IMG/VR virus record: IMGVR_UViG_3300028840_002431
Location: 248,001-312,000 of that record
DNA length: 64,000 nucleotides
Direction: 5' to 3' (one strand)
In this document: one piece after another, positions 2,732-53,900 of the stretch
Position numbering within the stretch: the stretch's first letter is position 1
Layout of the letters: each line of letters opens with the position of its first letter
Notes under the pieces: model-generated
The model's database searches: none
What the model was told of the DNA's origin: nothing
What the model saw: the letters and a program-made list of their open reading frames with translations, nothing else
Translations under genes and position numbers: made by a program

Positions 2732-3022
2732 TCACCGACTCTTACGCCGCTTCTTGGATTTCTTCTTAGCCTTCTTAGCCTCTTCCCGGATATCTCTTTC
2801 TAACTCCCGGACGTGTGTGCGGCAATCGTCACACAGGGTACTAGGCTTCCCGTTTGGTAGGAGACGGGCCGGGTTCGGGCAGCGTGAACATAAGCCTTGT
2901 TTCTTACGTCCAGCCCGGTACTGAGCCATCTTCTTTCGTTGATGATCTAAGTGACGCTTGCAAAGGCGTTTGCCATCATGCACAACCTCACCGCAACCAA
3001 AAGCACAAAGTTTTTGAGTCAT
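2732..3022 (-). CDS. Small basic Cys-rich (zinc-finger) protein
   Basis: CAFGC, CKRH, CSRC, CDDC pairs; Lys/Arg tail; ATGA overlap with the upstream gene. Confidence 0.6.
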   Translation of the reverse strand: MTQKLCAFGCGEVVHDGKRLCKRHLDHQRKKMAQYRAGRKKQGLCSRCPNPARLLPNGKPSTLCDDCRTHVRELERDIREEAKKAKKKSKKRRKSR

Positions 3023-3438
3023 ACTATATCATCGTCCAAATGGGCAAATAGGTCTTTTGTCTCCGACTTGCCTTCTTCCGGCTCCCTGTCAGTGTACAGA
3101 GGGCCTTCTATTGTGGTTTCGCCCGTCAGGGTTAACGTGAAAGTCCTCGCTTCATCGTACGAAGCGAATTCGGAAAAGAGGTAGGCACCTTCTTTATGAT
3201 ATCTTACAGTCCAAATCGAGGGTTCGGCTTTCAATTCTTGTTCTTCGTAGACAGCCGCGACAATCTCGTCCTCATGACTCACGAGATAAGTAGCCCCTAA
3301 GTGGTCCACAACAAGACCAGGGCAGTCCGACCGTCGTGCCTCTTGATGGACTTTGGCCGCAACGAAGGCACGTCCCTCCAACAACGAGGATGCAGTTCTC
3401 ACTGTTTCGTTCTTCATAAAACGCATTGGTGACATCAT
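3019..3438 (-). CDS. Hypothetical protein with C-terminal DLFAHLDDD tag
   Basis: ORF directly follows the CCGGTGTAGAAT motif. Confidence 0.6.
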   Translation of the reverse strand: MMSPMRFMKNETVRTASSLLEGRAFVAAKVHQEARRSDCPGLVVDHLGATYLVSHEDEIVAAVYEEQELKAEPSIWTVRYHKEGAYLFSEFASYDEARTFTLTLTGETTIEGPLYTDREPEEGKSETKDLFAHLDDDIV

Positions 3439-3450
3439 ATTCTACACCGG
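3439..3450 (-). promoter_or_regulatory. Recurrent phage promoter motif CCGGTGTAGAAT
   Basis: One of about 13 intergenic (C/T)GGTGTAnnn copies at gene-block starts. Confidence 0.65.
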
Positions 3451-3523
3451 AATTATTGCGGAAGACATCGTTTTTTAGGGTCTTTCGCATGGACCTTTTA
3501 TCCGTAAGCAGTAGAGAGGACGA

Positions 3524-4738
3524 ATGACGAAAGCGACCGCACTGATGAAGTTTCTTTCCCAGGCCGCCAAACGGCTTGGGGTTGCCGACCACGTGTACAT
3601 CGTTGGAGGGGCGGTCAGAAACTACCTCATGGGTATCGCCCCCAAAGACGTGGACATGGTCATCGACTCCCTGGCTCTGGGCCGGGGAAGGGACTCTGAG
3701 TGGTTCGCAAAGAAGCTCCAAAGGGTAATCCCAGCCAGGACGAGCCTCACGACCAACCAGTACGGGGTAGCCATCCTGACGGTTGCCGACTCCTGGGAAC
3801 TGGGCGGCCACGACATGAAAGGGGAGGTGTTGGAAATCGCCAACGCCCGTAAGGAGTCGTATGGAGGCCCAGAGGGCAAAGGCTACAAACCCCACACAGT
3901 GGAACCGGCGACCATCGAAGAGGACCTCCTGAGGCGGGAGTTCACATTCAACACCCTGTTGTGGCGGCTTCTGGATCTCGAACACGGTGCCGAGAGAGCC
4001 GAAGTCATCGACCTCCTTGGCCGGGGACGCAAGGATCTGGAAGAACGACTGCTAACCACGCCTGTCGATCCGGACAAGACGTTCTCCGACGACCCTACCC
4101 GGATGCTCAGGGCCATCAAGTTCGTGGCCAAGTATGGGTTCAAGATCCCACCGGACGTGAAGGCAAGCATCCAGAGGAACGCCGGGAAGCTTTTGCGGAT
4201 GCCATGGGACGCCGTTCGTAAGATTCTGATTGAGGATATCCTCGAAGGCCCGGCTCCCCGTAAAAGCGTGAAGCTGTTACACGACCTTGGGTTGGGAGAG
4301 GTTCTCAAGGACATGCTCCAAAAGGAATCCGGTTTCGCGGCGGCGTTAACCCGGAGCCTGAGCGAGAAGGAAATCCATCTGGTCCTGGATCTTCTCGACC
4401 TGGGTTGGACCATGAAGACGCCGGTATCCTTCTTGGACGCGAAAGGGTTGAGACGCCTCCGAGAAATCCTACTGTCGAATGCGAACGACCCGGCCTTCGA
4501 GAAACGGTTCCTGGCCTCCTTGAAGAAGCCTCCCATTGATCAGGTACGCCTCTTCGAGACCTATCAGTTGAAAGGCCAGGATCGAGGTGAGGTCGCACAG
4601 TTAGCCCGTGCCGCTCTCTTGGAAGAACCGGAGCTTGCTGAGAAGCCGTCAGAGTTGGAGCGGCATGTTGAAGAGGCGGTCGAGAAGAGATTCAAACGTA
4701 CGGCACGGATCGTGAAGAGATACCTCAGGAGTCTGTAG
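3524..4738 (+). CDS. Class II tRNA nucleotidyltransferase (CCA-adding/poly(A) polymerase family), no HD domain
   Basis: YIVGGAVRN, KDVD, EDLLRREFTFN, FSDDPTRMLRAIKF; RBS GAGGA. Confidence 0.9.
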   Translation: MTKATALMKFLSQAAKRLGVADHVYIVGGAVRNYLMGIAPKDVDMVIDSLALGRGRDSEWFAKKLQRVIPARTSLTTNQYGVAILTVADSWELGGHDMKGEVLEIANARKESYGGPEGKGYKPHTVEPATIEEDLLRREFTFNTLLWRLLDLEHGAERAEVIDLLGRGRKDLEERLLTTPVDPDKTFSDDPTRMLRAIKFVAKYGFKIPPDVKASIQRNAGKLLRMPWDAVRKILIEDILEGPAPRKSVKLLHDLGLGEVLKDMLQKESGFAAALTRSLSEKEIHLVLDLLDLGWTMKTPVSFLDAKGLRRLREILLSNANDPAFEKRFLASLKKPPIDQVRLFETYQLKGQDRGEVAQLARAALLEEPELAEKPSELERHVEEAVEKRFKRTARIVKRYLRSL

Positions 4739-5779: not shown

Positions 5780-5786
5780 GTTATTT

Positions 5787-5798
5787 CCGGTGTAGTAT
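5787..5798 (+). promoter_or_regulatory. Promoter motif CCGGTGTAGTAT, 5 nt before ATG (leaderless)
   Basis: CCGGTG-TAGTAT-taggt-ATG(5804). Confidence 0.7.
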
Positions 5799-5803
5799 TA
5801 GGT

Positions 5804-6349
5804 ATGCTTATAGATGTTTCGCGTAAGCCAATCAGGCTGATTCCAGAGGAGTGCGCGTCCGTTGTCGTCGTTCGCACGATGGCGATTCGTGGCGGTGCTT
5901 CTGGTATTATACACCAGCACATAAAGACCAAATACACGAGCAAGGACTCCTCGTTAGCCCCGACTGTTACAGTCCCCAACGGTGACGTGGAGCACATAGA
6001 GACACTTTTACCAGCCCCGAACATCCTGGTACCCAAGGTCAAAGCACAACACGGCCTACATTCCCGGCCGGAACACCACACCGTATCAGGCTACCAAGAC
6101 CTCACAACCAAACGGACCGGGACGTGGCGCGTCAATTTCATTTTCGACGGCACACAGAAAGATGACTACTTGCTCACGTTGTTCGACGAGACCAACAGTG
6201 TAATGTTGTTCACGGTCCAGATACAACCGTCGGACAACCAACTGTGGCGTGTGACAACACCTCTACGGCGTTTTCTCAATCGCCAGATGAACGACGGACT
6301 CGAAGGAGCGGACGGTCTTTGGGGCGCGGTCCTGGACGACGACTTCTAG
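5804..6349 (+). CDS. Hypothetical protein with C-terminal GLWGAVLDDDF
   Basis: 181-aa ORF directly after the promoter motif. Confidence 0.6.
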   Translation: MLIDVSRKPIRLIPEECASVVVVRTMAIRGGASGIIHQHIKTKYTSKDSSLAPTVTVPNGDVEHIETLLPAPNILVPKVKAQHGLHSRPEHHTVSGYQDLTTKRTGTWRVNFIFDGTQKDDYLLTLFDETNSVMLFTVQIQPSDNQLWRVTTPLRRFLNRQMNDGLEGADGLWGAVLDDDF

Positions 6350-6376
6350 AACCACCGAACGGTCAAGGAGGAGAGC

Positions 6377-6649: not shown

Positions 6650-6850
6650 TCAGAGCCTGGGTGTGAGCAGAGCCGTCACCCACACCAAAGCGGTCCCAAT
6701 AGCCGCAGCCGCTTGCGACGGTTGTCCGTGTCGAGAGAGCGCCCAAACCAACACGGTTGTCCCCGCCATGAAGTGTATACCCAAGCCGCCCATTAGGATC
6801 ATAACGAGTTCCTTCTTCGCAGCGGCTATCTTTGCCTTTGTTTCGCTCAT
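6650..6850 (-). CDS. Small two-TM membrane protein
   Basis: Two hydrophobic stretches; ATGA overlap with the upstream ORF. Confidence 0.5.
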   Translation of the reverse strand: MSETKAKIAAAKKELVMILMGGLGIHFMAGTTVLVWALSRHGQPSQAAAAIGTALVWVTALLTPRL

Positions 6851-7185
6851 TTCACATCCTTGACACAATCGAAGAAGTTGAGGGAGGGCTTCACGGGTTT
6901 GGTTGGTTTCCGTCCGCGTCGTAAAACCATACCGTCTTCGAACGGGACGGTTTCCTCTCTGTAGACCACGTACCAGTTCCGTTTTTTCTGGTAAACGTGA
7001 AAGCCGAGTCCGAACTGCTCGCTCGTTTCGTTCATACGCTTTTTCGTCGTGGTTGTCTTATGCCCACCGGAATCCAAGACTATACGCTTGTAGTTGAAAC
7101 CAACGACTCTCGTTCCATGGTAAATGACGTTTGTTGAGTTCTCGTCCGTGTAAACCTGAGTCCCGGTTTTTCCTATGGTCATCAC
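6847..7185 (-). CDS. Hypothetical phage protein
   Basis: Coupled to the kinase stop; GHKTTTTKKRMN motif; ends SLNFFDCVKDVK. Confidence 0.6.
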   Translation of the reverse strand: MMTIGKTGTQVYTDENSTNVIYHGTRVVGFNYKRIVLDSGGHKTTTTKKRMNETSEQFGLGFHVYQKKRNWYVVYREETVPFEDGMVLRRGRKPTKPVKPSLNFFDCVKDVK

Positions 7186-8093
7186 ACCGCTCGCTCAGGC
7201 ATCGGGAACGGTCGGTACTTGCGTTTGCCTATGGCTCGTTTGAGCACGCCATCGAACTCCTCGTGGGCGTCCCATGCGTCCTGTGGGCGTTTGGAGGGTA
7301 CCGACCAGAGACAGGTCTTTAAGAAATCTCGAACGAGCTTGGGGACAGAGTCCGACATCTGGTTGGTCGAGACATTACCCCCAACCAGCGCAACGGCACA
7401 TTTGGCAGCCATGTAGATGTCTGTAGCAGCGGTGGGGGTCTCCTTGGCCAGAATCTCCGGAGCGTAGAAATCCTTGTAAGGAGCGCTGATCGCTTTCACG
7501 TGCGGGTTCGAGAGAAAGGTGTCATCCGTCAGGTAGTCGTATAACGTCGGACCCTTCTTGGCTTTCGCCTTCTTGGGTGTGATGTCCACGGCATAGGACC
7601 AGTCGATGATCTTGGCCCCGTGGTCGGTTGGATGGATCAGCACGTGGGGCGGTATCAGAGCACCATGCACAATGCGATTCGTGTGAGCGAACCCTATGCC
7701 ATGCAGGATACGGTTGAACATCCACACCATATCCCGGAAGTCGATCCCATCTGGAAAAGCCTCCAACACTTCCGCGAGCGAGCGGTGCTCATTGAACCAA
7801 GGCAGGATGTTGACTCGCCGTTGGGACGGGACCAGGAACGAATCTAACACCCGTGGGAGAAAACGGTAAAACTTCTCGTCCTTGGCCGTCGGCGGGTACA
7901 ACCTTCCCAGGATCTTGGCTTCGTTCTCAACAAGATCATTGTCTGCGCTTTGTTTGACCACTTTGAAAACTACCGGGTACTCGTTGGTCCCGTTGAACAC
8001 TACGCAGTTATAAACGTCGCAGATGTCTCCCGACGCGAGTTTGTCAGTGAGGACGTACTTCTTGTTCTTGTGTTCGATCGCTATCGGTTCCAT
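7182..8093 (-). CDS. Ser/Thr protein kinase-like protein (atypical catalytic loop)
   Basis: LASGDICDVY, VFKV, NEAKIL, IVHGALIPPHVLI, IIDWS, YAPE, TDIYMAA. Confidence 0.8.
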   Translation of the reverse strand: MEPIAIEHKNKKYVLTDKLASGDICDVYNCVVFNGTNEYPVVFKVVKQSADNDLVENEAKILGRLYPPTAKDEKFYRFLPRVLDSFLVPSQRRVNILPWFNEHRSLAEVLEAFPDGIDFRDMVWMFNRILHGIGFAHTNRIVHGALIPPHVLIHPTDHGAKIIDWSYAVDITPKKAKAKKGPTLYDYLTDDTFLSNPHVKAISAPYKDFYAPEILAKETPTAATDIYMAAKCAVALVGGNVSTNQMSDSVPKLVRDFLKTCLWSVPSKRPQDAWDAHEEFDGVLKRAIGKRKYRPFPMPERAV

Positions 8094-9444
8094 GTCTTTC
8101 TTCTTCCCGAGGCCACGGGGTCTTGTCTTCGTATGTGGGTCCGGTTGAGCACAGTGTTACAGGTGTCTTGAGTTCTTGCGCTATATCGTCCAGGAAAGCG
8201 CTTCTGTCAAAAAGCTTCACGACCGGGATTGCGTTTTCGATCTTACGAGTTAACTCTTCTTGCTTGTCGAGATTGGGTTCTAGCCCTCGAAGGCAGCCGT
8301 AGAGATCCAGACGCTGTTGGACCGGCAGTTTGGTAATAGAGACGCCTTTTTCTAACACATAACCTACACACACTGACGGCCGGTCCGTTACTCTCAATTT
8401 ATCGAGGTTGGTGATCACCAATTCATCTACACCACCGATAACTTCAAGGGCGTATCTGGCCAGGACCATGTCGAAGTGCCCCAGGCGGAAGCTCTGTTGC
8501 CACTCGCCGTATTTGTTGTGTGTATCCGTGGCGTACTCTGTACAATTTCCGGCCGCGTCCTTGTCATGGACCTCCGTTGGGAAGGGGCCAGCGCCGTGCC
8601 TTGTCATGTAGGCGCGTAGAATTCCCATCCTACGTACCGGCCCGTTGAAATCTCCGAGTAGTTCGTAGGCGTTGTTGAAGGTTATGTCGGAGCGCGTGAC
8701 GTAAGGGAAGAAACCGTAATCCTGGTCCAACAAGACCCCCTGCGCTCCCTCGAAGATAACGGTCGAATCCCGCGACAACCGGAATTCTAACCAGTTGCGA
8801 TCGACGATGTTAATCTTGCAGCCAAAGGCGTGATACCGCACCGCGTAGTAAGACAATGCCGCTTCATCCCGGAGCAAGAGCAGGTTGGGGTCCCCGGCAT
8901 CAATGTCACACCCCTCGAACTCCTTCAGTTTCAGGTTTCGCGAGAAACGCAACTTCTCGTGAACCTTATCCCGATTCGGGAGATCCCCGATCCTCAGTGC
9001 CATGTCAGGATGCTCCAAGGCGTCCTTGGCTGTTTCTCCGATACCCATTCCGCAAGATCCGTGACGCTTGTTTCGAATGGTCTCTCGTAACCGGTTGGCG
9101 GCCACCTGATAGACGTTCGTTACCAGGGCTTCGCCTTCGACGAACAAGACGTTGTAGGGAGAGTGGCCAAGGGCCACAAGAGCTTGGACCTCCTCCTCCA
9201 AGGCGAGCGGGTTGACCATCATGTATCGGCTCAAGAGAGTGTCCGCCCCGGCCAGCGTCCCGCTACCAAACTGTGCAAACGTGTGGTGAGTTCCGTTGGG
9301 GAGAACGACGTTGTGAGCGGCTTGAGCACCTCCACAGTATCTGACTACCAGTTTGGAATGGTAGAGGCGGGTCAGGTAATCGACGATGGAGCCTTTGCCC
9401 TCATCCCCGAAACCCAACCCGGCTATGAGGATCACCTTTGCCAC
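8044..9444 (-). CDS. Adenylosuccinate synthetase-like protein (divergent PurA family)
   Basis: GLGFGDEGKG, GGAQAAH, GSCGMGIG, FEGAQGVLLD..FPYVTRS, AYMTRHGAGPFPTE; GTG start overlaps the NAMPT stop (TAGTG). Confidence 0.88.
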   Translation of the reverse strand: MAKVILIAGLGFGDEGKGSIVDYLTRLYHSKLVVRYCGGAQAAHNVVLPNGTHHTFAQFGSGTLAGADTLLSRYMMVNPLALEEEVQALVALGHSPYNVLFVEGEALVTNVYQVAANRLRETIRNKRHGSCGMGIGETAKDALEHPDMALRIGDLPNRDKVHEKLRFSRNLKLKEFEGCDIDAGDPNLLLLRDEAALSYYAVRYHAFGCKINIVDRNWLEFRLSRDSTVIFEGAQGVLLDQDYGFFPYVTRSDITFNNAYELLGDFNGPVRRMGILRAYMTRHGAGPFPTEVHDKDAAGNCTEYATDTHNKYGEWQQSFRLGHFDMVLARYALEVIGGVDELVITNLDKLRVTDRPSVCVGYVLEKGVSITKLPVQQRLDLYGCLRGLEPNLDKQEELTRKIENAIPVVKLFDRSAFLDDIAQELKTPVTLCSTGPTYEDKTPWPREEERHGTDSDRTQEQEVRPH

Positions 9445-11811: not shown

Positions 11812-12792
11812 TTACAGTCGTACGTTTGTGCTCGCCTTATCTCCGTCCGGGACATCCCCGACGGTCGCGTCTCGAAGGGCTTCGCTGTTGGCCAGGGAGT
11901 TCAGGGCGGCCGTGACCACCTTGGCGTCCTTGCCGCCGCCGAGATCCGCCTCCACCTTGTCCAGGGTCAGCGCGTTCTCGAACATACCGACGCACGATCC
12001 GATGGCCTCACAGACCACTTCCGGGTCGTCCAGCATAAGGACGTGCTCTTCACCGACCAGTTCGGACCACGTCTCCTTCAGCCACGGCTCGCTGTAGTAG
12101 GAACTGCCGCCCGGAATGATGAAGAACAGGTTGTAACGCTCCTGGACCTCCTTGATGAGTTCCTTCGTCGTCACGTTCTGGTTCACCTTGTCCCCGAAGA
12201 TGTCCTTGATCTCCCGAGGGGTGGAACCCCCGTAAGGCCGCTCATCTCCGATCAGGAACAGGTAGCCCTTCTTGCCCCGCTTCTCCCAACAGTCGATGCT
12301 GGTCTTGCGGGCGAAGAAGTACAGGGCATTCTGGTAACTCTCTTCCCGGCTACCGCCACCCCCGCCTTCCAGGTACAGAAGGCCGAGTTGCTCGTCGATC
12401 TCGATTCCGGACTCGAACTGTCCGACTTGCAGTGGGACCCGGTCGGAGTTGTAGTCCCCAACACCGCCGACCATGATCTGAGGATCTTCGCAGTACTCCT
12501 TCTCCAGCAAAATCCCCATGAGCTTGGTCAGCTTCTCCTGTAACCGAGTCGGGACACTCCTCATGGAACCGGTGACATCGAACATGACTCCGATGGCTAC
12601 CGAGTTCGGATGAGCGTCCGAATCCCGAGACTCCCGGACCTCCACTCCCTTTGGGTCCAGCATGTCGTGGGCCTTGGCCGTCGTTCGCCCCCTTCTGATG
12701 TTGTCATCGTGGGCAAACGTCGGTGTGTTCGTCGCGGCCCGGTGACGGGCGCGGTCTCTGTACAGATCACTGCTCCAACTTGAACCACCCAT
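11812..12792 (-). CDS. vWA (MIDAS) domain protein
   Basis: MFDVTGSM MIDAS-like motif, GGGG..ESY, FLIGDE. Confidence 0.8.
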   Translation of the reverse strand: MGGSSWSSDLYRDRARHRAATNTPTFAHDDNIRRGRTTAKAHDMLDPKGVEVRESRDSDAHPNSVAIGVMFDVTGSMRSVPTRLQEKLTKLMGILLEKEYCEDPQIMVGGVGDYNSDRVPLQVGQFESGIEIDEQLGLLYLEGGGGGSREESYQNALYFFARKTSIDCWEKRGKKGYLFLIGDERPYGGSTPREIKDIFGDKVNQNVTTKELIKEVQERYNLFFIIPGGSSYYSEPWLKETWSELVGEEHVLMLDDPEVVCEAIGSCVGMFENALTLDKVEADLGGGKDAKVVTAALNSLANSEALRDATVGDVPDGDKASTNVRL

Positions 12793-18295: not shown

Positions 18296-18530
18296 AGACG
18301 CGAAGACGAACCAGATCTTGAGGCTGATCCGGAACCGCCTGAAAGAAGAGAACAAGACCCTCGAAGCTGCATTCAAGGGCGCGACAGACGAGTTGGAATG
18401 GTTGCGCACCAAAGGGAAAGAAGCACGGGTCCCGTCCGTAGAAGATCTGACACGCCGGGTCGGTAACGTAAGAACGACGTTGGCGCGGATCGAGCTTCTA
18501 CGGGAACTCGAAGAGGAAATCTCAGATTGA
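18288..18530 (+). CDS. Small hypothetical protein
   Basis: RBS GGAGG; part of a coupled chain. Confidence 0.55.
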   Translation: MSEDAKTNQILRLIRNRLKEENKTLEAAFKGATDELEWLRTKGKEARVPSVEDLTRRVGNVRTTLARIELLRELEEEISD

Positions 18531-18790
18531 CGAAAGAAGAGAGGATAACAAGAGCCGTAGCCGAAATTAACAAACGGTTCCGATTACGCACAGAGGACTT
18601 CGACCGGATTGTTGAGGCTCACAGCCTAGACCCAGATGACGACGACCTAATCAGCAAGCTCATCGACGACGGCTGGGAGCACGTCCTCTGGGAAGCGTAT
18701 AAAGGAGGCTTCGCGTACATGAACACCAACGATGAACCCGAACCACCTCCGCTACTTTTTCAAGAAATCATGAGGGACGAAAGGCGATAG
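18527..18790 (+). CDS. Small hypothetical protein ending PPPLLFQEIMRDERR
   Basis: TTG start overlapping the previous stop. Confidence 0.5.
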   Translation: MTKEERITRAVAEINKRFRLRTEDFDRIVEAHSLDPDDDDLISKLIDDGWEHVLWEAYKGGFAYMNTNDEPEPPPLLFQEIMRDERR

Positions 18791-20856: not shown

Positions 20857-21357
20857 ATGCCGACCAAAGAGCAGAAGAGAAGGGCCGAAGTAAAAAAGAA
20901 GAAGGCCGAAGCCGAAGCCCAGCATCTGGACGTAGCTGTTAAAACGGTGAACTACTGGCTCCAGCGTGCCAGGGCCGACGGCCGGGAAGAGTTCGTTGTG
21001 ACTGTGGAGCCGATGCGCCTGATTCTGGCCGCTCTCGAAAAGGAACTGGACGCCCTCAAGGACTGGAAGCGCGAGGCCAAGAAGAAAAAGAAGGCTCTCA
21101 AGCAACTGTCCGGTTGCGTCTCGTCTTTCCTGGTCTCCCTGGACACCCTCATGAACGAACCGGAGTCCTACGAGAGAGGCCGTAAATTCGCCCGAATTGC
21201 TAACACCCTGGACAGGGCCAATGATGAAGCCCGGTATTTCGAGCTAGGGGTGGACCACCGGAAAGACGAGAAAAAGCATGATCCTCTTGTAAGCTCGCAG
21301 GGGTATGAAGCTTGCCGAACGTGTGGCTGCCCGGTACCGGGAAGCGATAATTCGTAA
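20857..21357 (+). CDS. Hypothetical protein
   Basis: ORF immediately after rtcB. Confidence 0.5.
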   Translation: MPTKEQKRRAEVKKKKAEAEAQHLDVAVKTVNYWLQRARADGREEFVVTVEPMRLILAALEKELDALKDWKREAKKKKKALKQLSGCVSSFLVSLDTLMNEPESYERGRKFARIANTLDRANDEARYFELGVDHRKDEKKHDPLVSSQGYEACRTCGCPVPGSDNS

Positions 21358-21675: not shown

Positions 21676-22104
21676 TCACTTCGGCCGCATTCTAACAACG
21701 CGGATAACTTGCGCGGGGGAGAACGGTGTCGTTGTGGTCGATGTCGTAGCCCAAGAAGTAAACGGCGACGCGCCAGCCCAAGTGTAAGATCCGTTATCCA
21801 CCGTGTAAGTAACCTGGAAGGTGGGAACTGGTACGGGAGCCTGAACCTTTGTCTTGTCTAACTCTTCGAGGACACGGCCTAACAAGACAAAGAACTCCGC
21901 CTTGTCTTGGTCTCCCTGTGTCCGGTCGGGGTGTAGCTCTAACGCCAGCTTCTTATACTGCCGGTGCGCTTTCTTCTTGAGATCATCAAGGAGTGTTTGC
22001 GCCTGAGGGAGTGGTGATCTACGGATAGCTTCTAGATCCGTCTGGGTGACGCCGAGCGCTTGTAACGCCTTCTGGGCATCTTGTGGCGGAATCGGTGCTG
22101 GCAT
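21676..22104 (-). CDS. J-domain (DnaJ-like) protein
   Basis: YKKLALELHPDRTQGD (HPD motif); likely start MPAPIP at 22104. Confidence 0.7.
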   Translation of the reverse strand: MPAPIPPQDAQKALQALGVTQTDLEAIRRSPLPQAQTLLDDLKKKAHRQYKKLALELHPDRTQGDQDKAEFFVLLGRVLEELDKTKVQAPVPVPTFQVTYTVDNGSYTWAGASPFTSWATTSTTTTPFSPAQVIRVVRMRPK

Positions 22105-22137: not shown

Positions 22138-22860
22138 ATGCCCGCAGATAGCCCGCAAATTGGCGAGACTTGGTTCAACCCGGTCGCCCAAGTGAATGGT
22201 ATTGTCGCTTCCATCGACGAAGAACGAATTTATTTCGTGAGCCTCACCGGGAAACGAGCGCCCATACCATTGAGGAGCGTTCTCCACGTTTGGGAGTTTC
22301 GAAAAGCTGCACCGAATACTTACAGACGGTGTTCCCGAGAGGGGTGCGACCGGAACGCCTTTATCCAATACGAACGCCCACGAAAGGGGTTAGAGATCGT
22401 CTGCCCCTTTCACGTCCCCAGAGGCGTCGAATCAACCATTTACACAGACGATACGCGCCGACGAGACTTCTTCAAAGCTGAGACGTGCGAGAAGTGCGGT
22501 ACGGACGGAACCGAAGTCTTCGGGGAGATGCCCGTGGAGTTAGCGGTAAAGGCGACCATGTGGAACTGCCAAACGTGCGGGATATGGTGGCTCAACGGGA
22601 CCATACCGGAAATGGAGACTCCGGAGCGGTTCGTTCGAGGCTCAAAATCAGTAGAGAACGCTGGCTCTGACGTTCTCAACGAAGCGATCCGAAAATTCCA
22701 CGGCATCCCTGGCTACCGAGGTGTTCGCGCCGAGACGTGGGTCAATCCACACAACATGGACTTGGGTTTCAACGTGTTCCTGAAACCCGGCCGCGATCAC
22801 GAGTTGAAAGGGCCTCAACCCCTGACCCTCTTTGACTACTTGAAGATGGACGACTTTTAG
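22138..22860 (+). CDS. Cys-rich hypothetical protein ending TLFDYLKMDDF
   Basis: CSREGC, CPFH, CEKC, CQTC; start MPADSP. Confidence 0.6.
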   Translation: MPADSPQIGETWFNPVAQVNGIVASIDEERIYFVSLTGKRAPIPLRSVLHVWEFRKAAPNTYRRCSREGCDRNAFIQYERPRKGLEIVCPFHVPRGVESTIYTDDTRRRDFFKAETCEKCGTDGTEVFGEMPVELAVKATMWNCQTCGIWWLNGTIPEMETPERFVRGSKSVENAGSDVLNEAIRKFHGIPGYRGVRAETWVNPHNMDLGFNVFLKPGRDHELKGPQPLTLFDYLKMDDF

Positions 22861-23617: not shown

Positions 23618-24319
23618 ATGACCTCACTTCTTGTTTGTCTCGCTCTGTCGATCGCCTTCTGTTTTGTGTTCGTGAAGGCCCAAGACAAGATCGCCCGGTT
23701 CATAGCCAAGAAGATGATCGAGAACGATGAGAAAAAGAAAGCCGAAACGGAGCGAGAAAAGTTAGACAGATTGATCTCCAAGACCGCTGAAAACATCGGT
23801 AGGGGCCTTAATGAGAGAGAAGAAACTCGTGAGCAAGAAAACCCCGCCGAAGAAGCACAAGAGGGACGTGGGGTCGTAGGTATAAGCGGCACCAGTGGGG
23901 GCCAATTTTCAGGTGTTTTAGGCACAGGTGTTATAGGACACAATGGAAGCACGGGGGAACACCACTGGGAAATACGCGGCAGCGATGAGCAGTTGAGGCG
24001 TCTGGAAGCCAACCTGGAAAGAATGACACAGGCTCTGGAACGTGCGGGTGATCGGACCGATGCGCTGTCCAACAGCATACGGTCCAACCTTGTTCGATCC
24101 ATGGCCCAAAGCCCGGACTACTCCGTCTTTCTCGAAGAAATGCAACGGAGGCAAGAGAACATAAGTCAACGCCTTGTTCCCGGCAACCTTCATTTTTCCA
24201 TGTCGGCAACCATGTCTGAGTCGAAGACAACGAAGCCAAAACCAGAACCCAAGGCGGAACCCAAAGAGCCGCCGCCAAAGACGCTCTACGACCACCTGAC
24301 CGAAGACGGCTCAGAGTAA
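23618..24319 (+). CDS. N-terminally membrane-anchored protein ending TLYDHLTEDGSE
   Basis: Hydrophobic residues 4-19; coiled coil; Pro/Lys linker. Confidence 0.65.
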   Translation: MTSLLVCLALSIAFCFVFVKAQDKIARFIAKKMIENDEKKKAETEREKLDRLISKTAENIGRGLNEREETREQENPAEEAQEGRGVVGISGTSGGQFSGVLGTGVIGHNGSTGEHHWEIRGSDEQLRRLEANLERMTQALERAGDRTDALSNSIRSNLVRSMAQSPDYSVFLEEMQRRQENISQRLVPGNLHFSMSATMSESKTTKPKPEPKAEPKEPPPKTLYDHLTEDGSE

Positions 24320-25786: not shown

Positions 25787-25828
25787 GTTGAACATCCCTT
25801 TATTCGATTATCTCAGTAGAGGGGTACT

Positions 25829-26299
25829 ATGAAAGATCACGAGCTAGTCGAATTCCGGGTCCGTTGTGCAACTGCTCAAACCTTTCAGCGGAAGATTGCA
25901 AACGCAGATGTGTATGCCGCTGAGTTGGAAGGTGAGACCGGGCCACTTCCACTTCCGCCCGGAGTGCCAAAGCATTCCCCGGCACATCTGATCCTTCTCC
26001 TCGACAAGGTCATCAAGATCCGATCCGGGAAGGAAAAGAAGGCCGAGCCGCCAAAGGCTAAGGCCGAGCCTAAGCCGAAAGCAAAGGCCGCTCCTAAGGC
26101 AGCGCCGAAGGCCAAGGCCAAGAAGGCCGAGCCTAAGCCGAAAGCAAAGGCCAAACCAGCCAAGAAGAAGGCTGCGCCCAAGAAGAAGAAAGCTGCCGCG
26201 AAGAAGGCTAAGCCAGCCGCCAAGGCCAAGAAGAAGGCTGCCCCTAAGAAGAAGGCTGCTACCAAGAAAAAGGCCGCTAAGAAGAAGGCCCGGCGCTAG
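25829..26299 (+). CDS. Histone H1-like Lys/Ala/Pro-rich DNA-binding protein
   Basis: C-terminal ~85 aa of KAEPKPKAKA / KKKAAP repeats. Confidence 0.75.
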   Translation: MKDHELVEFRVRCATAQTFQRKIANADVYAAELEGETGPLPLPPGVPKHSPAHLILLLDKVIKIRSGKEKKAEPPKAKAEPKPKAKAAPKAAPKAKAKKAEPKPKAKAKPAKKKAAPKKKKAAAKKAKPAAKAKKKAAPKKKAATKKKAAKKKARR

Positions 26300-26730
26300 T
26301 ATATGGTGGCGTAGTACTCAGCCCACTGCTCGTCCCAGTAGGCGTGGTGCTCTCTCGCACACTCCCGGCATAAAGGAGAGGGGGCGTTAGGATCGGGCGG
26401 TTTATCATCGTACATGACCGCGATCCAGAGAGAGTAATCAGGTTCCACGTAAGCCGTTCGGGAATCTTCTAACTCCACGCCCTCAGTGGAACCACAACGC
26501 TCGCACGCCTCTTTCGTCGGCGGGTATTTTCTTCTGTACGTGTTCTTGCCAGGACTCAGTTTGGCGAACTCCACGTTACCGGAAGTGGCCGTGGTCGTTG
26601 TTACTGGAAGCTGGACATCCCCGTTGGCGTTGGCCTCCACATTATAATCGACCCGGATGGTGTTGTCAGACGCAACCGTGGGGACAGTCAGGTTGTAAAC
26701 TGCGTTGCCGTGATTGAGGATGACCGGCAC
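26296..26730 (-). CDS. Hypothetical protein with CxxC pairs
   Basis: CERC...CREC; internal SLWIAVMYDD. Confidence 0.5.
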   Translation of the reverse strand: MPVILNHGNAVYNLTVPTVASDNTIRVDYNVEANANGDVQLPVTTTTATSGNVEFAKLSPGKNTYRRKYPPTKEACERCGSTEGVELEDSRTAYVEPDYSLWIAVMYDDKPPDPNAPSPLCRECAREHHAYWDEQWAEYYATIY

Positions 26731-39121: not shown

Positions 39122-40090
39122 TTAATCCCCCTCATACTCCTTGAGGAACCGCCGAAGCTCCGTATACGGGTCCACGCGCTCCGAGTCCGGGTCAAATGTT
39201 ATGCTGAATCCAGCGGCTTTGGTGTGGCCCCCGCCGCCGAACTTATTGCAAAATTCCGCACAGTTGAAATTCGTATGCGACCGTGTTGAGAACGTAAGGT
39301 TGGCCCTCCCGTCCTCCTCGATGCCGCCATACTTGAACCCGACCAACAGGTCAGCGTCTTCGTGGATGGCGTCGGCCGTGTCGCTGGTCAACTTGGTCCC
39401 GCTGATCACGGCGACTCTGGTCCCGCGAGGAGTCGTGAAGCGGAGAGCCTTGTTAACGGCGTAGTCAACATACCCCTCTGTGCGCTGCCTCAGGATCTGG
39501 CCAACCTCCCAGCGCTCTTCCCACCATCTCTTGAACTCCGCAGAGAAGATCCGATCCTTGGCCGCCACCTCCAACCAGGATTTCTCCGGGTAGAATCGGA
39601 ACGACTCCGCCAGAACGCACGCCATACGCCATTGTTCGCTGTCTCTCTGCCATGTATCTCGAATACCCGACAGGGTAGCTACCTTCTTGGCAAACGCACG
39701 CTCCTCATCGCTGTGATTGCCGATAGCGCTCCACACGTGGTCATGGGCCAGGACCGCCCCGCAAACACCAGGGTCCTTGTTCTCATCCCCGAAGATGCCG
39801 TTCTCACCGAACGCTTCGACGACCTCCCGGCTCGTCATGTGGTGGTCCAGGACGATCGCCCCGGCGTCCACGAACTCCTTGAGACGATCTGGATGCGGAG
39901 AGAAGTCGCAGAAAAGCATACCCGGAGTCGCTTCTAACATCCGGTGCTCCAAGGTGCTGTACTGGATGAACCTGACTTCCGCTTCCGGTAAAACGCTCTT
40001 ACAGAAAACGGCAGCGGCAACACCGTCAGCACACCAACCATGCGATATGATGGTCCTGACCTCTTTCAACTTGTCGAGCGAAATACTCAT
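39122..40090 (-). CDS. DHH/DHHA1 phosphoesterase (NrnB/oligoribonuclease-like)
   Basis: HGWCADG, CDFS, LDHH, GGGGHTKAAG. Confidence 0.85.
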   Translation of the reverse strand: MSISLDKLKEVRTIISHGWCADGVAAAVFCKSVLPEAEVRFIQYSTLEHRMLEATPGMLFCDFSPHPDRLKEFVDAGAIVLDHHMTSREVVEAFGENGIFGDENKDPGVCGAVLAHDHVWSAIGNHSDEERAFAKKVATLSGIRDTWQRDSEQWRMACVLAESFRFYPEKSWLEVAAKDRIFSAEFKRWWEERWEVGQILRQRTEGYVDYAVNKALRFTTPRGTRVAVISGTKLTSDTADAIHEDADLLVGFKYGGIEEDGRANLTFSTRSHTNFNCAEFCNKFGGGGHTKAAGFSITFDPDSERVDPYTELRRFLKEYEGD

Positions 40091-40461
40091 GGGAACAAAA
40101 TCTCGTATCTAACACCCGCGTCCCACAGCCTACCGGCCATGTCCTTGCTTCCACGGCTCTTGGCCCCTGTAGCGAAACCGTAAGCCTTATCAATTATTAC
40201 ACCATCTAGGTCCGGGTTCTCTTTTTCTAGCATTTCGGCGTTTCGTATTGGCCCGGCCGCTCTGCCATGTCTGTCCCAGTCGGCCGGGTATTCTCTCACC
40301 TCGAAGCCGAGTTCTTTGCCGATGCGTCCAGCGGCCCGATCCGCTCCGCGAGCACCTCCGTGAACCAGAGTTATGTGGTCCAGCTTCGCCAGCTTGGACA
40401 ATACCCTTCGAATTATATCATCTCGAACCCAGTTCCGAGAACCGAAAACCAGGATTTTCAT
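40087..40461 (-). CDS. SLOG family protein (YspA/DUF2493-like)
   Basis: ILVFGSRNW, LVHGGARGAD, PADW..HGRAAGPIRN.EM. Confidence 0.85.
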   Translation of the reverse strand: MKILVFGSRNWVRDDIIRRVLSKLAKLDHITLVHGGARGADRAAGRIGKELGFEVREYPADWDRHGRAAGPIRNAEMLEKENPDLDGVIIDKAYGFATGAKSRGSKDMAGRLWDAGVRYEILFP

Positions 40462-42019: not shown

Positions 42020-42538
42020 CTATTCATCACCCATCAGGTGGTCGTAGAGGTTGGGCTTGGTAGCAGCTTTGGCCGCCTTGGCGTCTTCTCTCGCCTTTAT
42101 TACCTTTTGTTTATCATTCAGCGGTTGGAAGTCACGGGGAATGTCGATCGGAAATTCTACAAGCCGGGTCCGCCCCGGACGAGAAAGACGTAAAACGAGC
42201 CGGTCTCCGTATCTTAAACTGAAGACTGGGTTAAGATACAACGAGCCTCCCATCTGAAACTCGTCTATCTTGACCCAGTCTAGGAGCCATCTCAAAGGCA
42301 CCGGGCCGCTTGGAGTCGGCATCAACAGAGCGTCCAGGGTGCCTTTTCGAGAAGGGAGCGTAACCGCTGGCCAGTCCAGAGTCGGATTGCAGACGATCGG
42401 GCAATCCGACTCTGTGCCTAGTATCTGTTGTTCGTGGTCCTGGGACTCGACGAAAGCAGTTTGTGTGGCTGGATCTATCTTGCGAACCAGCCACACCTTG
42501 GATTGCCATCGAAGTAAGTCACCAGTCCGGATCGTCAT
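42020..42538 (-). CDS. Hypothetical protein ending PNLYDHLMGDE
   Basis: Follows CGGTGTAGTGT (42547-42557, minus). Confidence 0.6.
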   Translation of the reverse strand: MTIRTGDLLRWQSKVWLVRKIDPATQTAFVESQDHEQQILGTESDCPIVCNPTLDWPAVTLPSRKGTLDALLMPTPSGPVPLRWLLDWVKIDEFQMGGSLYLNPVFSLRYGDRLVLRLSRPGRTRLVEFPIDIPRDFQPLNDKQKVIKAREDAKAAKAATKPNLYDHLMGDE

Positions 42539-47373: not shown

Positions 47374-47376
47374 CTG

Positions 47377-48066: not shown

Positions 48067-48071
48067 AAGCC

Positions 48072-48479
48072 TCACCCTAACACCACGGTCACGTCGTACT
48101 TTTCGAGGGGGTCCTCAAGAGTCCCCGCTCCCGCCGCCGTGATGGTACCGTGGATGATTTGTTCCCTGCCCCTCTCGTTGACGTAGGGGATCTCGATTCG
48201 CCACACCTTTGAGCTAGGCATCTTTGGCCGGGGTATCGTCCGCGACCACTCGTAGTCAGCCCGCTTTATTTCATACGGGATATCGTGATTCCTGAAAATC
48301 TTGAAGATCTCGTGAACGGGCTTCCAGTACGTGTCTCGGAAAATACCGTCCGGCGTGTTGCCGATCAGCTTGTAGAGGTACCGGACCGCTTTCTGCTTCC
48401 GCATGGAATCCAGCGGGTTAGCTTCTTCCAGGGCGGATTTGTAGCGAGCTACGACCCGATCAGAGGCATTCGCGTCCAT
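48072..48479 (-). CDS. Hypothetical protein, N-terminal DRVVARYKSA (candidate virion protein)
   Basis: RVVARY at 48441-48458. Confidence 0.6.
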   Translation of the reverse strand: MDANASDRVVARYKSALEEANPLDSMRKQKAVRYLYKLIGNTPDGIFRDTYWKPVHEIFKIFRNHDIPYEIKRADYEWSRTIPRPKMPSSKVWRIEIPYVNERGREQIIHGTITAAGAGTLEDPLEKYDVTVVLG

Positions 48480-48502
48480 GCCTTACAGAAAACACAAATA
48501 CT

Positions 48503-49768: not shown

Positions 49769-49792
49769 GACCCTAATATATTACACCGGAAA

Positions 49793-51144: not shown

Positions 51145-51154
51145 ACCCGGCCTC

Positions 51155-51937: not shown

Positions 51938-51973
51938 TAATAGACTATGGGAACGGATCTTAGTCCCGGCCCA

Positions 51974-52237
51974 CTACTCGTGCAATGAATTCTTCGGGGG
52001 ATGGGGCAACGCTATCCACGACTCTCCGTCTTCTTCCGTTATTACGTGGGCATCTTCTCCGTCGAGTTTATTTACCTCGTCAACTCGAACACCGTCGGCC
52101 TTCAAGACCTCTACGAACCCATCAATGTCGTCCGTCAGCACATTGAAGACGTTCATCCCCGGTTCGATAAAGATAACGGAAGGCTCTTCGTATTGAACCG
52201 AGACGGTCGAGAAGGCTTTAACAGAATAGTAATTCAC
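51974..52237 (-). CDS. Small hypothetical protein
   Basis: GTGA overlap with the upstream stop. Confidence 0.45.
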   Translation of the reverse strand: MNYYSVKAFSTVSVQYEEPSVIFIEPGMNVFNVLTDDIDGFVEVLKADGVRVDEVNKLDGEDAHVITEEDGESWIALPHPPKNSLHE

Positions 52238-53481
52238 GATACAACCTCTACCGACAAACCAGACTCTGGAACGTCTTTCAGTTGGTACACCGAAAACGTT
52301 CCTGGTTTGACGTAGAGTGTGTACGAGAATACGGCGGCCACTTCCCAACGCTCCAAGAACTCACGCGAGTCGCATTTGTATGAGTCCGGGTCCACACAAA
52401 GGTACGCCACCGGAGCCGACCAATCATGGAGCAGTATAGTTCTAACACCCGGTACCGGTAAGACTTTTTTGTCGGACGCCGCCTCCCGAAACGCCATGGC
52501 CACGTTGGGGTCAGCTATCCAAAACCCCGATGGCAGCGAATCTAACACTGACGCTTCGACGATATCGTCACGCAAATGGTCCCAGAGATCGTTCTGAGTG
52601 TTGGCCAGATGTGTGGCGATCTCCGTGGCCCACTTCGAGGCGATTTGACGTTTGAGGAGAGTGTAAGGATCGTGACGAAGATTGGAAGCAAGCGGGTCCA
52701 CGACTGGAGTTATCACACTAGCGCGGGCCTCAAAGCGATAGGCATCGCACTTGCCTTCTTGGTGTTCCTCCGTGCTGTCGCAACCACAGGCTTTGATCCC
52801 GCTACCTTCTACACACTCGACGGGGACCTCTGAAAGCTCGCAGAAATGGAGTAGGTCCAGGAACTCCCTGGCTATCCCGGACGGAGGGGGCAAGAGGTTG
52901 GGAAGGTCTTCTCGAAGGAGATCCACGATACGTTTCCGGCCGCCTCTGGTAGCCCTGAGGAGCCGGTTATCCCCCTCCTGAGCCAGGAACTCGGTCTGCG
53001 TCACCCGCTTGGCCAAGGTCTCCAAAACACGTTGGTCGCGGCCCCTACTGAACTCGTACTGAACAATCATTCCTTCCAGGTCGGGCCGTAAACGAGGCAG
53101 CGGTTTGACGGCCATCTTCCCGGTCTCACGCCTCACCGGTTCCGGGACGTAGATGTCCTTCTCGGAAACCGTGAAAAGCGCTCGTCCCGTTTCACGTGAA
53201 ACGATGAGCGTCTTGCCTTCTTTACCAAACTGGAAGAACTCATCAGCGAGGTAAAGGCACGTTTCCCAGAGGTTCTCCGCGTCCAACACATACTCGGGTA
53301 GCCGAACATACAAGGCGTCGGCCAACTTATCCGGAGGCCAGTTCTCAGCTTTGGCCGTCTTGAACACTTCTTGAAGATCCGGCCGCACTCGAATCGCTGT
53401 CCTGGCTGCCAGAAGAGAATCAGCGACGGGCTTTGCCAAGGTGTTGACCTTGGCTTCAACTGTGGCGAGTTTATCTGACAT
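52234..53481 (-). CDS. Hypothetical protein
   Basis: 415-aa ORF; TGATG coupling. Confidence 0.65.
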   Translation of the reverse strand: MSDKLATVEAKVNTLAKPVADSLLAARTAIRVRPDLQEVFKTAKAENWPPDKLADALYVRLPEYVLDAENLWETCLYLADEFFQFGKEGKTLIVSRETGRALFTVSEKDIYVPEPVRRETGKMAVKPLPRLRPDLEGMIVQYEFSRGRDQRVLETLAKRVTQTEFLAQEGDNRLLRATRGGRKRIVDLLREDLPNLLPPPSGIAREFLDLLHFCELSEVPVECVEGSGIKACGCDSTEEHQEGKCDAYRFEARASVITPVVDPLASNLRHDPYTLLKRQIASKWATEIATHLANTQNDLWDHLRDDIVEASVLDSLPSGFWIADPNVAMAFREAASDKKVLPVPGVRTILLHDWSAPVAYLCVDPDSYKCDSREFLERWEVAAVFSYTLYVKPGTFSVYQLKDVPESGLSVEVVS

Positions 53482-53900
53482 CAGAAACCGTCATCCTTGA
53501 TACACGCAAAGAGGTTTAGAACAGGATGGTCAAAACTACGATGTGACGGAAGGCGACGCCACCATTTTACACCCTTCTCTGGTATAGCCGTATAACCCCA
53601 GTATCCCGTCCCGTCTTCCGTCGGGACCGCTGGAACCAACCACCCTATGGTGTCTGTCTTCTCTAAGGTGATTATGGTGTTGCCGTTCGCGTCTTTACCG
53701 TCAGTCCCGGAGTCAACGAACTTACCGTCATCACCCATCGCGGTGATGTTCTTACCCTGATCGGCCGCCGCACAATCAGCGCAGTAAAGTTGAATATGGT
53801 TGGTCTGGTACGGACGCCAGAGTTTGCAGTCTCTAGCCAAACACTCCCCGCAGTAGTAGTTGTCTGGCACCACGCCGTTGAGATAACGGGCGCGTGCCAC
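53481..53900 (-). CDS. Zinc-binding hypothetical protein ending NLFACIKDDGF
   Basis: CGEC..CKLWR..CADC; GWLVPAVP..YWGYT. Confidence 0.6.
   Translation of the reverse strand: MARARYLNGVVPDNYYCGECLARDCKLWRPYQTNHIQLYCADCAAADQGKNITAMGDDGKFVDSGTDGKDANGNTIITLEKTDTIGWLVPAVPTEDGTGYWGYTAIPEKGVKWWRRLPSHRSFDHPVLNLFACIKDDGF

Follow-up and report, generated by a model that had tools for sequence, protein, structure and literature searches.

Unrelated proteins of an uncultured 416-kb phage share a short acidic-hydrophobic peptide that most likely acts as a docking motif

Why would about ten unrelated phage proteins, among them a protein kinase, carry the same short acidic-hydrophobic peptide? The question arose from a 64,000-nucleotide stretch (hereafter the window) of the IMG/VR contig 3300028840_002431, a 416-kb uncultured phage, in which a sequence-only reading had pointed out a recurrent peptide at the C-terminus of many proteins and had proposed that these proteins dock on one hub. 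We first examined whether the peptides exist as described. All ten translated exactly as claimed, at the given positions and strands, and lie in open reading frames that an independent gene caller also calls; the observation therefore holds. The carriers, the related features and their positions in the window are as follows (L and P numbers are our handles for relatives).

3019..3438, minus strand: carrier A, an ORFan of 135-139 aa with the tail ...KDLFAHLDDDIV (tail codons 3022-3057). The orthologue L023:16838-17242, 38% identical, ends ...TRNLFDHLNDA.
5804..6349, plus strand: carrier B, an ORFan of 181 aa with the tail ...GLWGAVLDDDF (6314-6346). The orthologues end ...GLWAALEDEDDL (L023, 35% identical) and ...GLWGAILDDAF (L066).
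6847..7185, minus strand: carrier C, 111 aa, with a Kyano_Gp96 domain (residues 7-88), a basic/Pro linker and the tail ...SLNFFDCVKDVK (6850-6885). The L066 orthologue ends ...GTLNFFDCVREVR.
7182..8093, minus strand: carrier D, a Hanks-type Ser/Thr kinase of 303 aa without a J-domain, identified by Pfam and PHROGs hits. The motif TLYDYLTDD (7521-7550) sits in an insert of roughly 30 residues (about 7494-7583) between the IDW (DFG-equivalent) and APE motifs and is kept in L023, P0004 and P0005.
18527..18790, plus strand: possible carrier E, 87 aa, with the tail ...PPLLFQEIMRDERR.
21676..22104, minus strand: a stand-alone J-domain protein of 142 aa (HPD motif; Pfam DnaJ, E = 2e-6), divergent from carrier F and not itself a carrier.
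22138..22860, plus strand: carrier F, an ORFan of 240 aa without Pfam or PHROG hit, with the tail ...QPLTLFDYLKMDDF (22825-22857).
23618..24319, plus strand: carrier G, an ORFan of 233 aa, in which a Pro/Lys/Glu linker precedes the tail ...PKTLYDHLTEDGSE (24281-24316). A search of 5.8 billion proteins returned no homologue.
26296..26730, minus strand: carrier H, 144 aa, with CxxC...CxxC and the internal copy SLWIAVMYDD (26404-26433) between the two Cys pairs.
42020..42538, minus strand: carrier I, 172 aa, with the tail ...KPNLYDHLMGDE (42023-42052). The orthologues end ...SANLYDHLLEDE (L019, 58% identical) and ...TPMLFARLRKRTE (P0003, 43% identical), with linkers that differ in length and sequence.
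52564..52590, minus strand: a motif-like internal stretch, DLWDHLRDD, in the conserved 415-aa protein K (52234-53481).
53481..53900, minus strand: probable carrier J, an ORFan of 130-139 aa inserted between the AAA ATPase gene and gene K, with the tail ...LNLFACIKDDGF (53484-53516).

The core of these copies reads cap(T/S/N/D/G)-x-[YFW]-[DA]-[HYC]-[LIV], followed by acidic residues, and lies 2-6 residues from the C-terminus, behind a variable linker. To evaluate whether such copies could arise by chance, we searched the six frames of the window with the strict pattern L[YF][DA][HY]L..[DE]. It occurs five times, always in real genes and four times within 1-3 residues of a stop, against 0.010 expected from a residue-shuffled proteome. 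A looser pattern gave 8 hits against 0.20 expected. Both patterns were chosen after seeing the data, and an unbiased BLOSUM seed and pair test on the last 16 residues was not significant. However, a motif model built only from 27 kinase inserts of other phages picked out the tails of I (score 16.8) and G (16.4), while 0.05 hits of 15 or more are expected in the whole proteome. The copies also differ at synonymous sites, indicating that selection acts on the protein and not on a DNA repeat.

Analysis of orthologues of only 30-73% identity confirmed that the tails of A, B, C and I, the kinase insert of D and the internal copy of H are kept while the linkers diverge. For the tails of A, B, C and I, which are islands of conservation, the orthologues are 35-58% identical. 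F and G are ORFans, and the gene for J is absent from the syntenic site in 8 relatives. E fits the clade-wide pattern only loosely and no orthologue was found, so that J and E remain plausible copies only. The stretch in K, found in addition to the cited copies, lies in a variable segment with a 5-residue insertion and is not conserved in 7 orthologues, which makes it doubtful as a functional copy. The reading that the copies share no function, being chance or compositional look-alikes or remnants of a duplicated gene end, could draw on the non-significant unbiased tests and on the four carriers without orthologue, but it is already contradicted by the independent model, the conserved tails, the synonymous differences and the kinase and variant data given below. 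No tags were found in 33 further genes of the same genome flanking the window, which counts against the docking reading given below; the tags are regional and not genome-wide.

Two side claims of the sequence-only reading were also examined. The GGTGTA promoter motif does precede five carriers, but it precedes 26 of 94 genes, including PolA and ClpX. It is not specific to the carriers, and the description of these as early proteins is not shown. The claim that no protein carries both this tag and the RVAxRY tag holds in the window, but not in the relative L024, at L024:18449-19003.

The sequence-only reading missed the kinase-centred pattern and the J-domain relationship. Alignments showed that related kinases carry the insert at either of two sites, the beta2-beta3 loop of the N-lobe or the activation segment, and almost every insert holds the motif. 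Of 36 kinases without an N-terminal J-domain-type extension, 28 have such an insert, against 5 of 97 with the extension, and the tree needs at least three gains. The AF2 model of the window kinase (mean pLDDT 96) predicts a helix at residues 184-189, at pLDDT about 80 in an insert of pLDDT 80-86, although most rows of the alignment lack the insert, and Foldseek matched the model to eukaryotic-like kinases. Tagged ORFs occur in 8 of 10 loci whose kinase carries the motif, against 2 of 26 loci with a J-domain kinase only (about 1e-4 by our calculation, not corrected for relatedness).

The near exclusivity of motif and J-domain suggests chaperone recruitment as a possible role: the tag would bind a phage J-domain protein, or DnaK itself, and would do in trans what the N-terminal J-domain does in cis in most kinases of this family. 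In total, 75 of 133 kinases have an N-terminal HPD J-domain, and forms with both J-domain and motif (P0005, P0011) are sisters of motif-only forms, as expected if the J-domain was lost after the motif was gained. The genome encodes two stand-alone J-domain proteins, the one next to carrier F and a conserved 343-aa protein with 87 homologues and no motif of its own. We nevertheless consider this reading unlikely, since an acidic motif is a poor DnaK or DnaJ client sequence and the association reduces to a few events on the tree, where an independent-pairs test, which had no power, gave p = 1. In addition, the C-terminal domain of the 343-aa protein is confidently folded by prediction but matches no known peptide-binding fold.

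In each genome, the kinase copy and the tails share a variant (L-, R-, V/M- or A-type). Kinase copy against tails scored BLOSUM 23.9 within a genome and 15.0 between genomes (permutation p = 1.5e-4), and the residue at position -1 is the same in 7 of 8 genomes. The same behavior is seen at an orthologous site of H, with SLWIAVM in the window and TRFERIL[ED]PE in L027, L028 and L044, the variant used by those R-type genomes. The loci that carry the motif form a related clade, and the locus-level association, the J-domain exclusivity and part of the co-variation could therefore come from shared ancestry or from tails being copied within a genome.

In relatives, the motif is also carried by a GH73 cell-wall hydrolase, an adenylosuccinate synthetase and a zinc-ribbon protein. 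Another possible reading is a virion-packaging or ejection signal, in which the tag would bind the scaffold, portal or inner capsid surface and the carriers would be loaded into the head and injected with the DNA, much like the T4 capsid-targeting sequence or an encapsulin cargo-loading peptide. The carriers are mostly diverse ORFans that share only the tag, like the T4 internal proteins (PMC3012670). The GH73 glucosaminidase, encoded next to the kinase in L024 and L046, has no signal peptide or membrane segment, and one motif-carrying kinase, P0034, is fused to a peptidoglycan-binding domain. A phage-encoded receptor would also fit the co-variation. Conversely, an adenylosuccinate synthetase carries the tag too, no protease site is conserved next to it, and it is C-terminal or internal rather than N-terminal and cleaved as in T4. 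This reading remains improbable on present evidence.

Among the hubs put forward by the sequence-only reading, a sliding clamp, either gp45-like or the host beta clamp, appears very unlikely. The RB69 polymerase tail SLFDMFDF resembles TLFDYLKMDDF of carrier F and the architecture matches the T4 tails (PMC2988020), but no clamp or clamp-loader family was found in about 90 kb including the PolA/DnaB/primase/SNF2 module. PolA itself lacks the tag, and the carriers are a kinase, a lysin, a purine enzyme and ORFans, not DNA enzymes or replication proteins. The motif does not fit QL[SD]LF, and the residue that would be the PIP-box hydrophobic plug is R in many genomes. An SSB-type tip or an ssrA-type degron, which need a fixed extreme C-terminus, are likewise disfavoured, since the last residues vary, one tail has 14 extra residues and conserved copies sit in internal loops. 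Docking on the N-domain of the phage ClpX or of the Cdc48-like AAA ATPase, for unfolding, timed degradation or as adaptors, remains possible but unlikely. The phage encodes a ClpX with a zinc-binding domain and a single-ring AAA ATPase closest to Cdc48/p97 D2 with a 200-aa N-domain. Both are 57-82% identical across relatives, as a conserved receptor should be, and carrier J lies directly behind the AAA gene. AAA+ N-domains commonly read tethering motifs that work at internal positions. However, nothing links the motif directly to either ATPase, and a degron in the activation loop of a kinase would be unusual.

Taken together, these results partly support the interpretation of the sequence-only reading: its core inference, that many unrelated proteins dock on one hub through a short hydrophobic-acidic tail, is backed by the conservation of the tails, the convergent gain in kinase loops and the co-variation within genomes. 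Our best reading, to which we assign a probability of roughly 0.78, is a short linear docking motif, a capped amphipathic helix of about 6-10 residues followed by acidic residues, with the pattern cap (T/S/N/D/G), x, aromatic, D/E/A, H/R and an aliphatic residue. It is attached by a flexible linker of free sequence to the C-terminus of fast-evolving accessory proteins and inserted in surface loops of two conserved proteins, the phage Ser/Thr kinase and a zinc-ribbon protein. In this view, all copies in one genome would bind one receptor, as yet unidentified, that co-evolves with the phage lineage, and the tag would bring a changeable set of proteins, including the kinase and, in relatives, the GH73 hydrolase and the adenylosuccinate synthetase, to one place or one machine. 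We regard as established by the analysis that the motif is real and under selection at the protein level, that, judged from its conservation, it works at internal positions as well as at tails, that it was gained convergently and that its copies co-vary within genomes, whereas binding to a single receptor, and the identity of that receptor, are inferred. The leading specific model, which is only tentative, centres the network on the kinase: the kinase domain would carry the pocket, its own loop copy would regulate it in cis, and the tails would dock substrates or regulators. This version has no direct support, as no column of the kinase core co-varied with motif position -1 (minimum p = 0.003 over 909 tests).

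The closest analogues of the motif are the T4/RB69 clamp-binding tails, the T4 capsid-targeting sequence and the PDK1 PIF-pocket docking system. A kinase-centred network would work like the PIF pocket of PDK1, where an aromatic-acidic motif near the C-terminus of many proteins docks on a pocket of a kinase domain (PMC7614687). Kinases of that family also bind their own copy in cis. Here the kinase is the one constant carrier and its copy lies in regulatory loops, the beta2-beta3 loop or the activation segment, instead of a C-terminal tail; there is no homology beyond the Hanks fold, and no pocket has been identified. The T4/RB69 clamp-binding tails of gp43, gp55 and gp33 follow the same logic, with a short hydrophobic-acidic peptide at the C-terminus of functionally different phage proteins, behind a divergent flexible linker, interchangeable and functional when placed internally (PMC2988020). 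The T4 consensus, [ST]LDFL[FYL], has a different residue order, and the polymerase here is family A and untagged. In the T4 capsid-targeting system, a highly diverse set of accessory proteins shares nothing but an address peptide of roughly 10 residues that binds one phage structure (PMC3012670). The T4 signal is N-terminal and is cut off by the prohead protease, while no cleavage motif is visible next to the tag described here. In encapsulin cargo-loading and microcompartment encapsulation peptides, a terminal short motif or amphipathic helix behind a flexible linker targets unrelated enzymes to one shell, but the sequences differ and no shell or compartment gene has been linked to the present motif. 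Finally, the SSB C-terminal tip, the T7 gp2.5 and gp4 acidic tails, ending GDF and TDF, and the ssrA degron share acidic tails that end in a hydrophobic residue, as do some copies here, which end DDF or DIV. Those signals depend on the extreme C-terminus, whereas in this phage clade the last residues vary freely and internal copies are conserved.

The window, at positions 248,004-312,003 of the 416,539-bp IMG/VR contig 3300028840_002431, belongs to an uncultured phage that was assembled from several metagenomes. No cultured phage is close: megablast finds nothing, and the best PolA match is 32% identical, in a 485-kb uncultured phage. The window encodes a family A DNA polymerase, a DnaB helicase, a primase zinc ribbon, an SNF2 helicase, a topoisomerase IB, a ClpX with its zinc finger, a Cdc48-like AAA ATPase, a CCA-adding enzyme, RtcB, a 2H phosphoesterase, NAMPT, NUDIX/NrtR, an adenylosuccinate synthetase and a Ser/Thr kinase. 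The features discussed below, besides the tagged carriers, are as follows.

Window 8044-9444, 7182-8093 and 11812-12792 (all -): a module of the kinase (7182-8093), an adenylosuccinate synthetase and an unknown protein of about 330 aa.
Window 40087-40461: an ORF ending ...GRLWDAGVRYEILFP.
Window about 25770-25832 (+): a 21-codon ORF ending ...IPLFDYLSRGVL.
Window 53481-53900 (-): gene J, a probable carrier.
Window 56022-56681 (-): a 219-aa protein just downstream of PolA.
Window 61037-62521 (-): DnaB.
L038:6012-7043 (same genome, about 2 kb beyond the window end): a conserved 343-aa J-domain protein.
L067:15643-19999 (same genome, 4-8 kb before the window start): genes for an AcrVA2-like protein, a patatin-like phospholipase and a family X DNA polymerase, which fits a counter-defence and accessory region.

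Every peptide cited in the sequence-only reading translates as written, and its observation of a recurrent acidic-hydrophobic motif held. The pattern L[YF][DA][HY]L..[DE] occurs five times in six frames; all five are in real genes, four lie 1-3 residues from the stop, and the fifth is in the kinase. Shuffled proteomes give 0.010 such hits, and a looser pattern gives 8 hits against 0.20 expected. These patterns were chosen after the fact, and unbiased pairwise and seed-neighbour BLOSUM tests on the last 16 residues, against internal and shuffled controls, were not significant, being too noisy for a 6-residue core. Independent support came from a scoring matrix built only from 27 motif instances in kinases of other phages, which scores the tails of carriers I and G at 16.8 and 16.4, while only 0.05 hits of 15 or more are expected in the whole proteome. 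The copies use different synonymous codons, which rules out a DNA repeat.

To determine whether the motif is conserved, we compared the carriers with their orthologues. Carrier I has two orthologues, one ending ...SANLYDHLLEDE (58% identical) and the other ...TPMLFARLRKRTE (43% identical), with linkers before the tails that differ in length and sequence. The 38% identical orthologue of the ORFan A ends ...TRNLFDHLNDA, the ORFan B ends ...GLWAALEDEDDL in one relative and ...GLWGAILDDAF in another, and carrier C, in which the tail lies beyond the Pfam domain, ends ...GTLNFFDCVREVR in its orthologue. The internal copy SLWIAVMYDD of carrier H, listed in the sequence-only reading, aligns with TRFERIL[ED]PE in three orthologues. 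The motif is thus an island of conservation in A, B, C, I, H and the kinase (carrier D). This comparison left out F, J and E, as well as G, which has no homologue among 5.8 billion proteins. A further motif-like stretch in the conserved protein K is not conserved in orthologues. The end of the 40087-40461 ORF is not a tag and shows no similarity to the tagged ORF at the same position in the related locus L019. Gene J is inserted between the AAA ATPase gene and gene K, which are directly adjacent in all 8 relatives. The 21-codon ORF starts just after the stop of gene 24908-25786, in the +1 frame, and could be a decayed or frameshifted tag. The 33 genes flanking the window on both sides carry no tag, and the tags therefore cluster in the accessory region.

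Two other elements raised by the sequence-only reading recur in the window. GGTGTA, which it placed as a promoter motif directly ahead of five carriers, lies 10-16 nt upstream of many start codons window-wide (for example 5789, 16096, 23603, 42551, 49782) and within 150 nt upstream of 26 of 94 genes, including PolA and ClpX, with 46 sites against about 31 expected. It looks like an element next to the start codon, not a mark of the tag carriers. Its other tag, RVAxRY (4717-4734, 21320-21337, 39059-39076, 48444-48461), sits at the N-terminus of three proteins, including topoisomerase IB, and near the C-terminus of the CCA-adding enzyme. That reading found no protein of the window with both tags, but in the relative L024 one zinc-ribbon protein (L024:18449-19003) ends ...RIVKRFTGENTRFDRVLEDD, which has both.

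Carrier D is a Hanks-type Ser/Thr kinase by sequence and by predicted fold, with Pfam Pkinase at 1.4e-9, PHROG_3043 at 5e-42, an AF2 model at pLDDT 96 and Foldseek probability 1.0 to MST2, Aurora A, CaMKII and PknB, i.e. to eukaryotic-like kinases in general. The motif lies in a roughly 30-residue insert, absent from most homologues, between the DFG-equivalent IDW and APE, which is the activation segment. AF2 folds LYDYLT as a helix (residues 184-189) inside an insert with pLDDT 80-86. The family (window 7182-8093 (-); relatives P0005-P0140; L069:3758-4831) is large, with 590 representatives at E of 1e-30 or better. Among 133 aligned members, 75 have an N-terminal extension of about 95 residues with an HPD J-domain signature, for which Pfam DnaJ gives weak hits. 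Most members of this phage kinase family are fusions of an N-terminal J-domain (HPD) with a Hanks-type kinase. The only cultured phages with this kinase family are cluster C mycobacteriophages, whose kinase, such as Catera gp249, is the J-domain form without the motif. Of the 36 members without any N-terminal extension, 28 carry an insert, either in the N-lobe beta2-beta3 loop or in the activation segment, against only 5 of the 97 with an extension. Nearly every insert holds a basic/Pro linker followed by a motif variant, for example ATMWDILLEDDE, GTIFERLKEDDD or LTVWERLMNDEDE. The tree needs at least three gains (a main N-lobe clade, a separate N-lobe pair inside the J-domain clade, and the activation-segment forms) and places J-plus-motif forms as sisters of motif-only forms, although most branches are weakly supported and the independent-pairs test of J-domain against motif had no power. 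The kinase, the synthetase and the protein of about 330 aa form a module kept in 28-32 of 32 loci and in Catera, where the synthetase is annotated '2-aminooxy adenylosuccinate synthetase'.

Loci around 36 kinases were then fetched. Tagged ORFs occur in 8 of the 10 loci whose kinase has the motif, and in 2 of the 26 with a J-domain kinase only. Within each genome the kinase copy and the tails share a variant: at position -1, L in the window and L023, R in L024, L028, L044 and L046, V/M in L026 and A in L041. Kinase-to-tail similarity is 23.9 within genomes and 15.0 between them (p = 1.5e-4 by permutation). These genomes are related, and part of this signal could be ancestry, or copying of tails within a genome. 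The tagged proteins with a recognisable domain are a GH73 glucosaminidase encoded right after the kinase in L024 and L046, a DUF3268 zinc-ribbon protein, and one adenylosuccinate synthetase, whose tail is an extension missing from 29 orthologues. One kinase that carries the motif (P0034) is fused to a peptidoglycan-binding domain. Its middle domain has no Pfam hit, and a likeness to GH73 is not claimed, since it rests on one heptapeptide (E = 0.11).

These features fit a short linear docking motif, i.e. a capped amphipathic helix plus acidic residues on a flexible tether. The core is 6-10 residues, lies behind Pro/Lys/Glu-rich linkers that differ between orthologues, and appeared convergently in carriers that have unrelated domains or none. 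The analysis itself establishes that the motif is real, kept at C-termini and in loops under selection on the protein, gained convergently and co-varying within genomes, whereas binding, and its reading by one receptor per genome that drifts in specificity, are inferred. The sequence-only interpretation, that many early proteins dock on one hub, is thus supported in part.

Four candidate receptors remain, each with only circumstantial support. The first is the kinase itself, which is the constant carrier, with copies in regulatory loops and an insert modelled by AF2 at fair confidence; however, no column of the kinase core tracks motif position -1. The second is the procapsid, which fits the ORFan diversity and the tagged cell-wall hydrolase but not the tagged purine enzyme. 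A J-domain protein or DnaK is suggested because motif inserts and the J-domain rarely occur together, and by two stand-alone J-domain proteins in the genome. The 343-aa J-domain protein has 87 homologues in related phages, and its 250-aa C-terminal domain is modelled at pLDDT 95, but no PDB fold matches at E below 0.02 and the ESM Atlas gave nothing useful. The last candidates are the ClpX and the Cdc48-like ATPase, both highly conserved. Regarding ClpX, which keeps its zinc-binding domain, the 219-aa protein downstream of PolA has a Pro-rich linker and a C-terminal tail VRVVKPGxKIKLG that is conserved in 8 genomes and resembles the ClpX-binding tail of SspB, and it could be a ClpX adaptor. 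Comparing the gene content of loci with a motif kinase against those with a J-domain kinase recovered only clade synteny and no receptor candidate.

A bolder reading, possible but less likely than not, is that the motif is the address label of a docking network, centred on the kinase or on the virion, of a type not described before in huge phages. In the kinase version, the phage kinase would read the label on its substrates through a PIF-like pocket and be regulated by its own loop copy, a system that in this lineage would have taken over the role of the J-domain found on most kinases of the family. In the virion version, the label would load an injected set of proteins, including the kinase, a cell-wall hydrolase and diverse ORFans, into the capsid. 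In both versions new accessory genes would join the system simply by acquiring about ten codons.

Literature searches found no description of this motif or of J-domain kinases in phages. Huge phages are full of ORFans with no handle on their function, and a shared, conserved, co-varying address tag groups about a tenth of the proteins in this region, plus a kinase, into one functional network, as inferred here, and gives a direct bait, a 10-residue peptide, for finding the receptor. The data also show how short motifs evolve in a virus: they are gained convergently in kinase loops, appended to a metabolic enzyme, and swapped in register at orthologous sites, in this view as the receptor's specificity drifts. 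The near absence of motif inserts and the N-terminal J-domain from the same kinase is a natural experiment on what the J-domain does for a phage kinase, and the J-domain form exists in culturable cluster C mycobacteriophages. If the tag turns out to be a packaging or localisation signal, it could serve to target cargo.

Known signals were compared one by one. The SSB tip, the T7 gp2.5 and gp4 tails and the ssrA degron depend on a fixed extreme C-terminus and are disfavoured, because the tails here end GSE, GDE, DDF, DIV, DVK, NDA, DDL, DPV and EDD, one tail is followed by 14 more residues, and internal copies are conserved. The DnaB orthologues, for their part, end in variable acidic-hydrophobic tails, for example ...SLGGLLDEYAV and ...HDEYLEAMNLPI, which recalls the T7 gp4 tail that contacts its family A polymerase. 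The bacterial beta-clamp motif, a QL[SD]LF-type pentapeptide, does not fit, since there is no conserved Q and D occupies the position of the second Leu. In the PIP box, Q-x-x-[LIM]-x-x-[FY]-[FY], the corresponding Q is absent here, the would-be plug position is R, V, M or A in many genomes, and the aromatic pair is replaced by [HR]-[LIV]. The T4 capsid-targeting sequence (PMC3012670), the model for the procapsid candidate, is N-terminal and removed by the prohead protease, whereas the tags here are C-terminal or internal and no conserved cleavage motif flanks them. The PIF pocket of PDK1 (PMC7614687) is the model for the kinase candidate.

In logic, the nearest known system is the T4 set of clamp-binding tails (PMC2988020), likewise hydrophobic-acidic C-terminal peptides behind a divergent linker. 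Several things argue against a clamp here. Pfam found no clamp or clamp loader in about 90 kb that includes the replication module, about 78% of the genome lying outside this search, and the conserved 190-290-aa proteins near PolA gave a CN hydrolase, an HTH, a helicase C-terminal domain and a primase zinc ribbon. The polymerase is family A and, like DnaB and the primase, untagged, and the clients are not DNA enzymes but a kinase, a lysin, a purine enzyme, zinc-ribbon proteins and ORFans. The tails read from the records are ...ASLDFLFG (T4 gp43), ...PSLDFLYEAND (T4 gp55), ...NTLDFLL (T4 gp33) and ...ASLFDMFDF (RB69 gp43). The clade-wide core T-x-[FWY]-D-[HR]-[LIV] does not match the T4 residue order, consensus [ST]LDFL[FYL], while the tail of the ORFan carrier F resembles that of RB69 (SLFDMF). 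What the two systems have in common is a shared address peptide on phage proteins, here with new clients and a receptor that is not identified.
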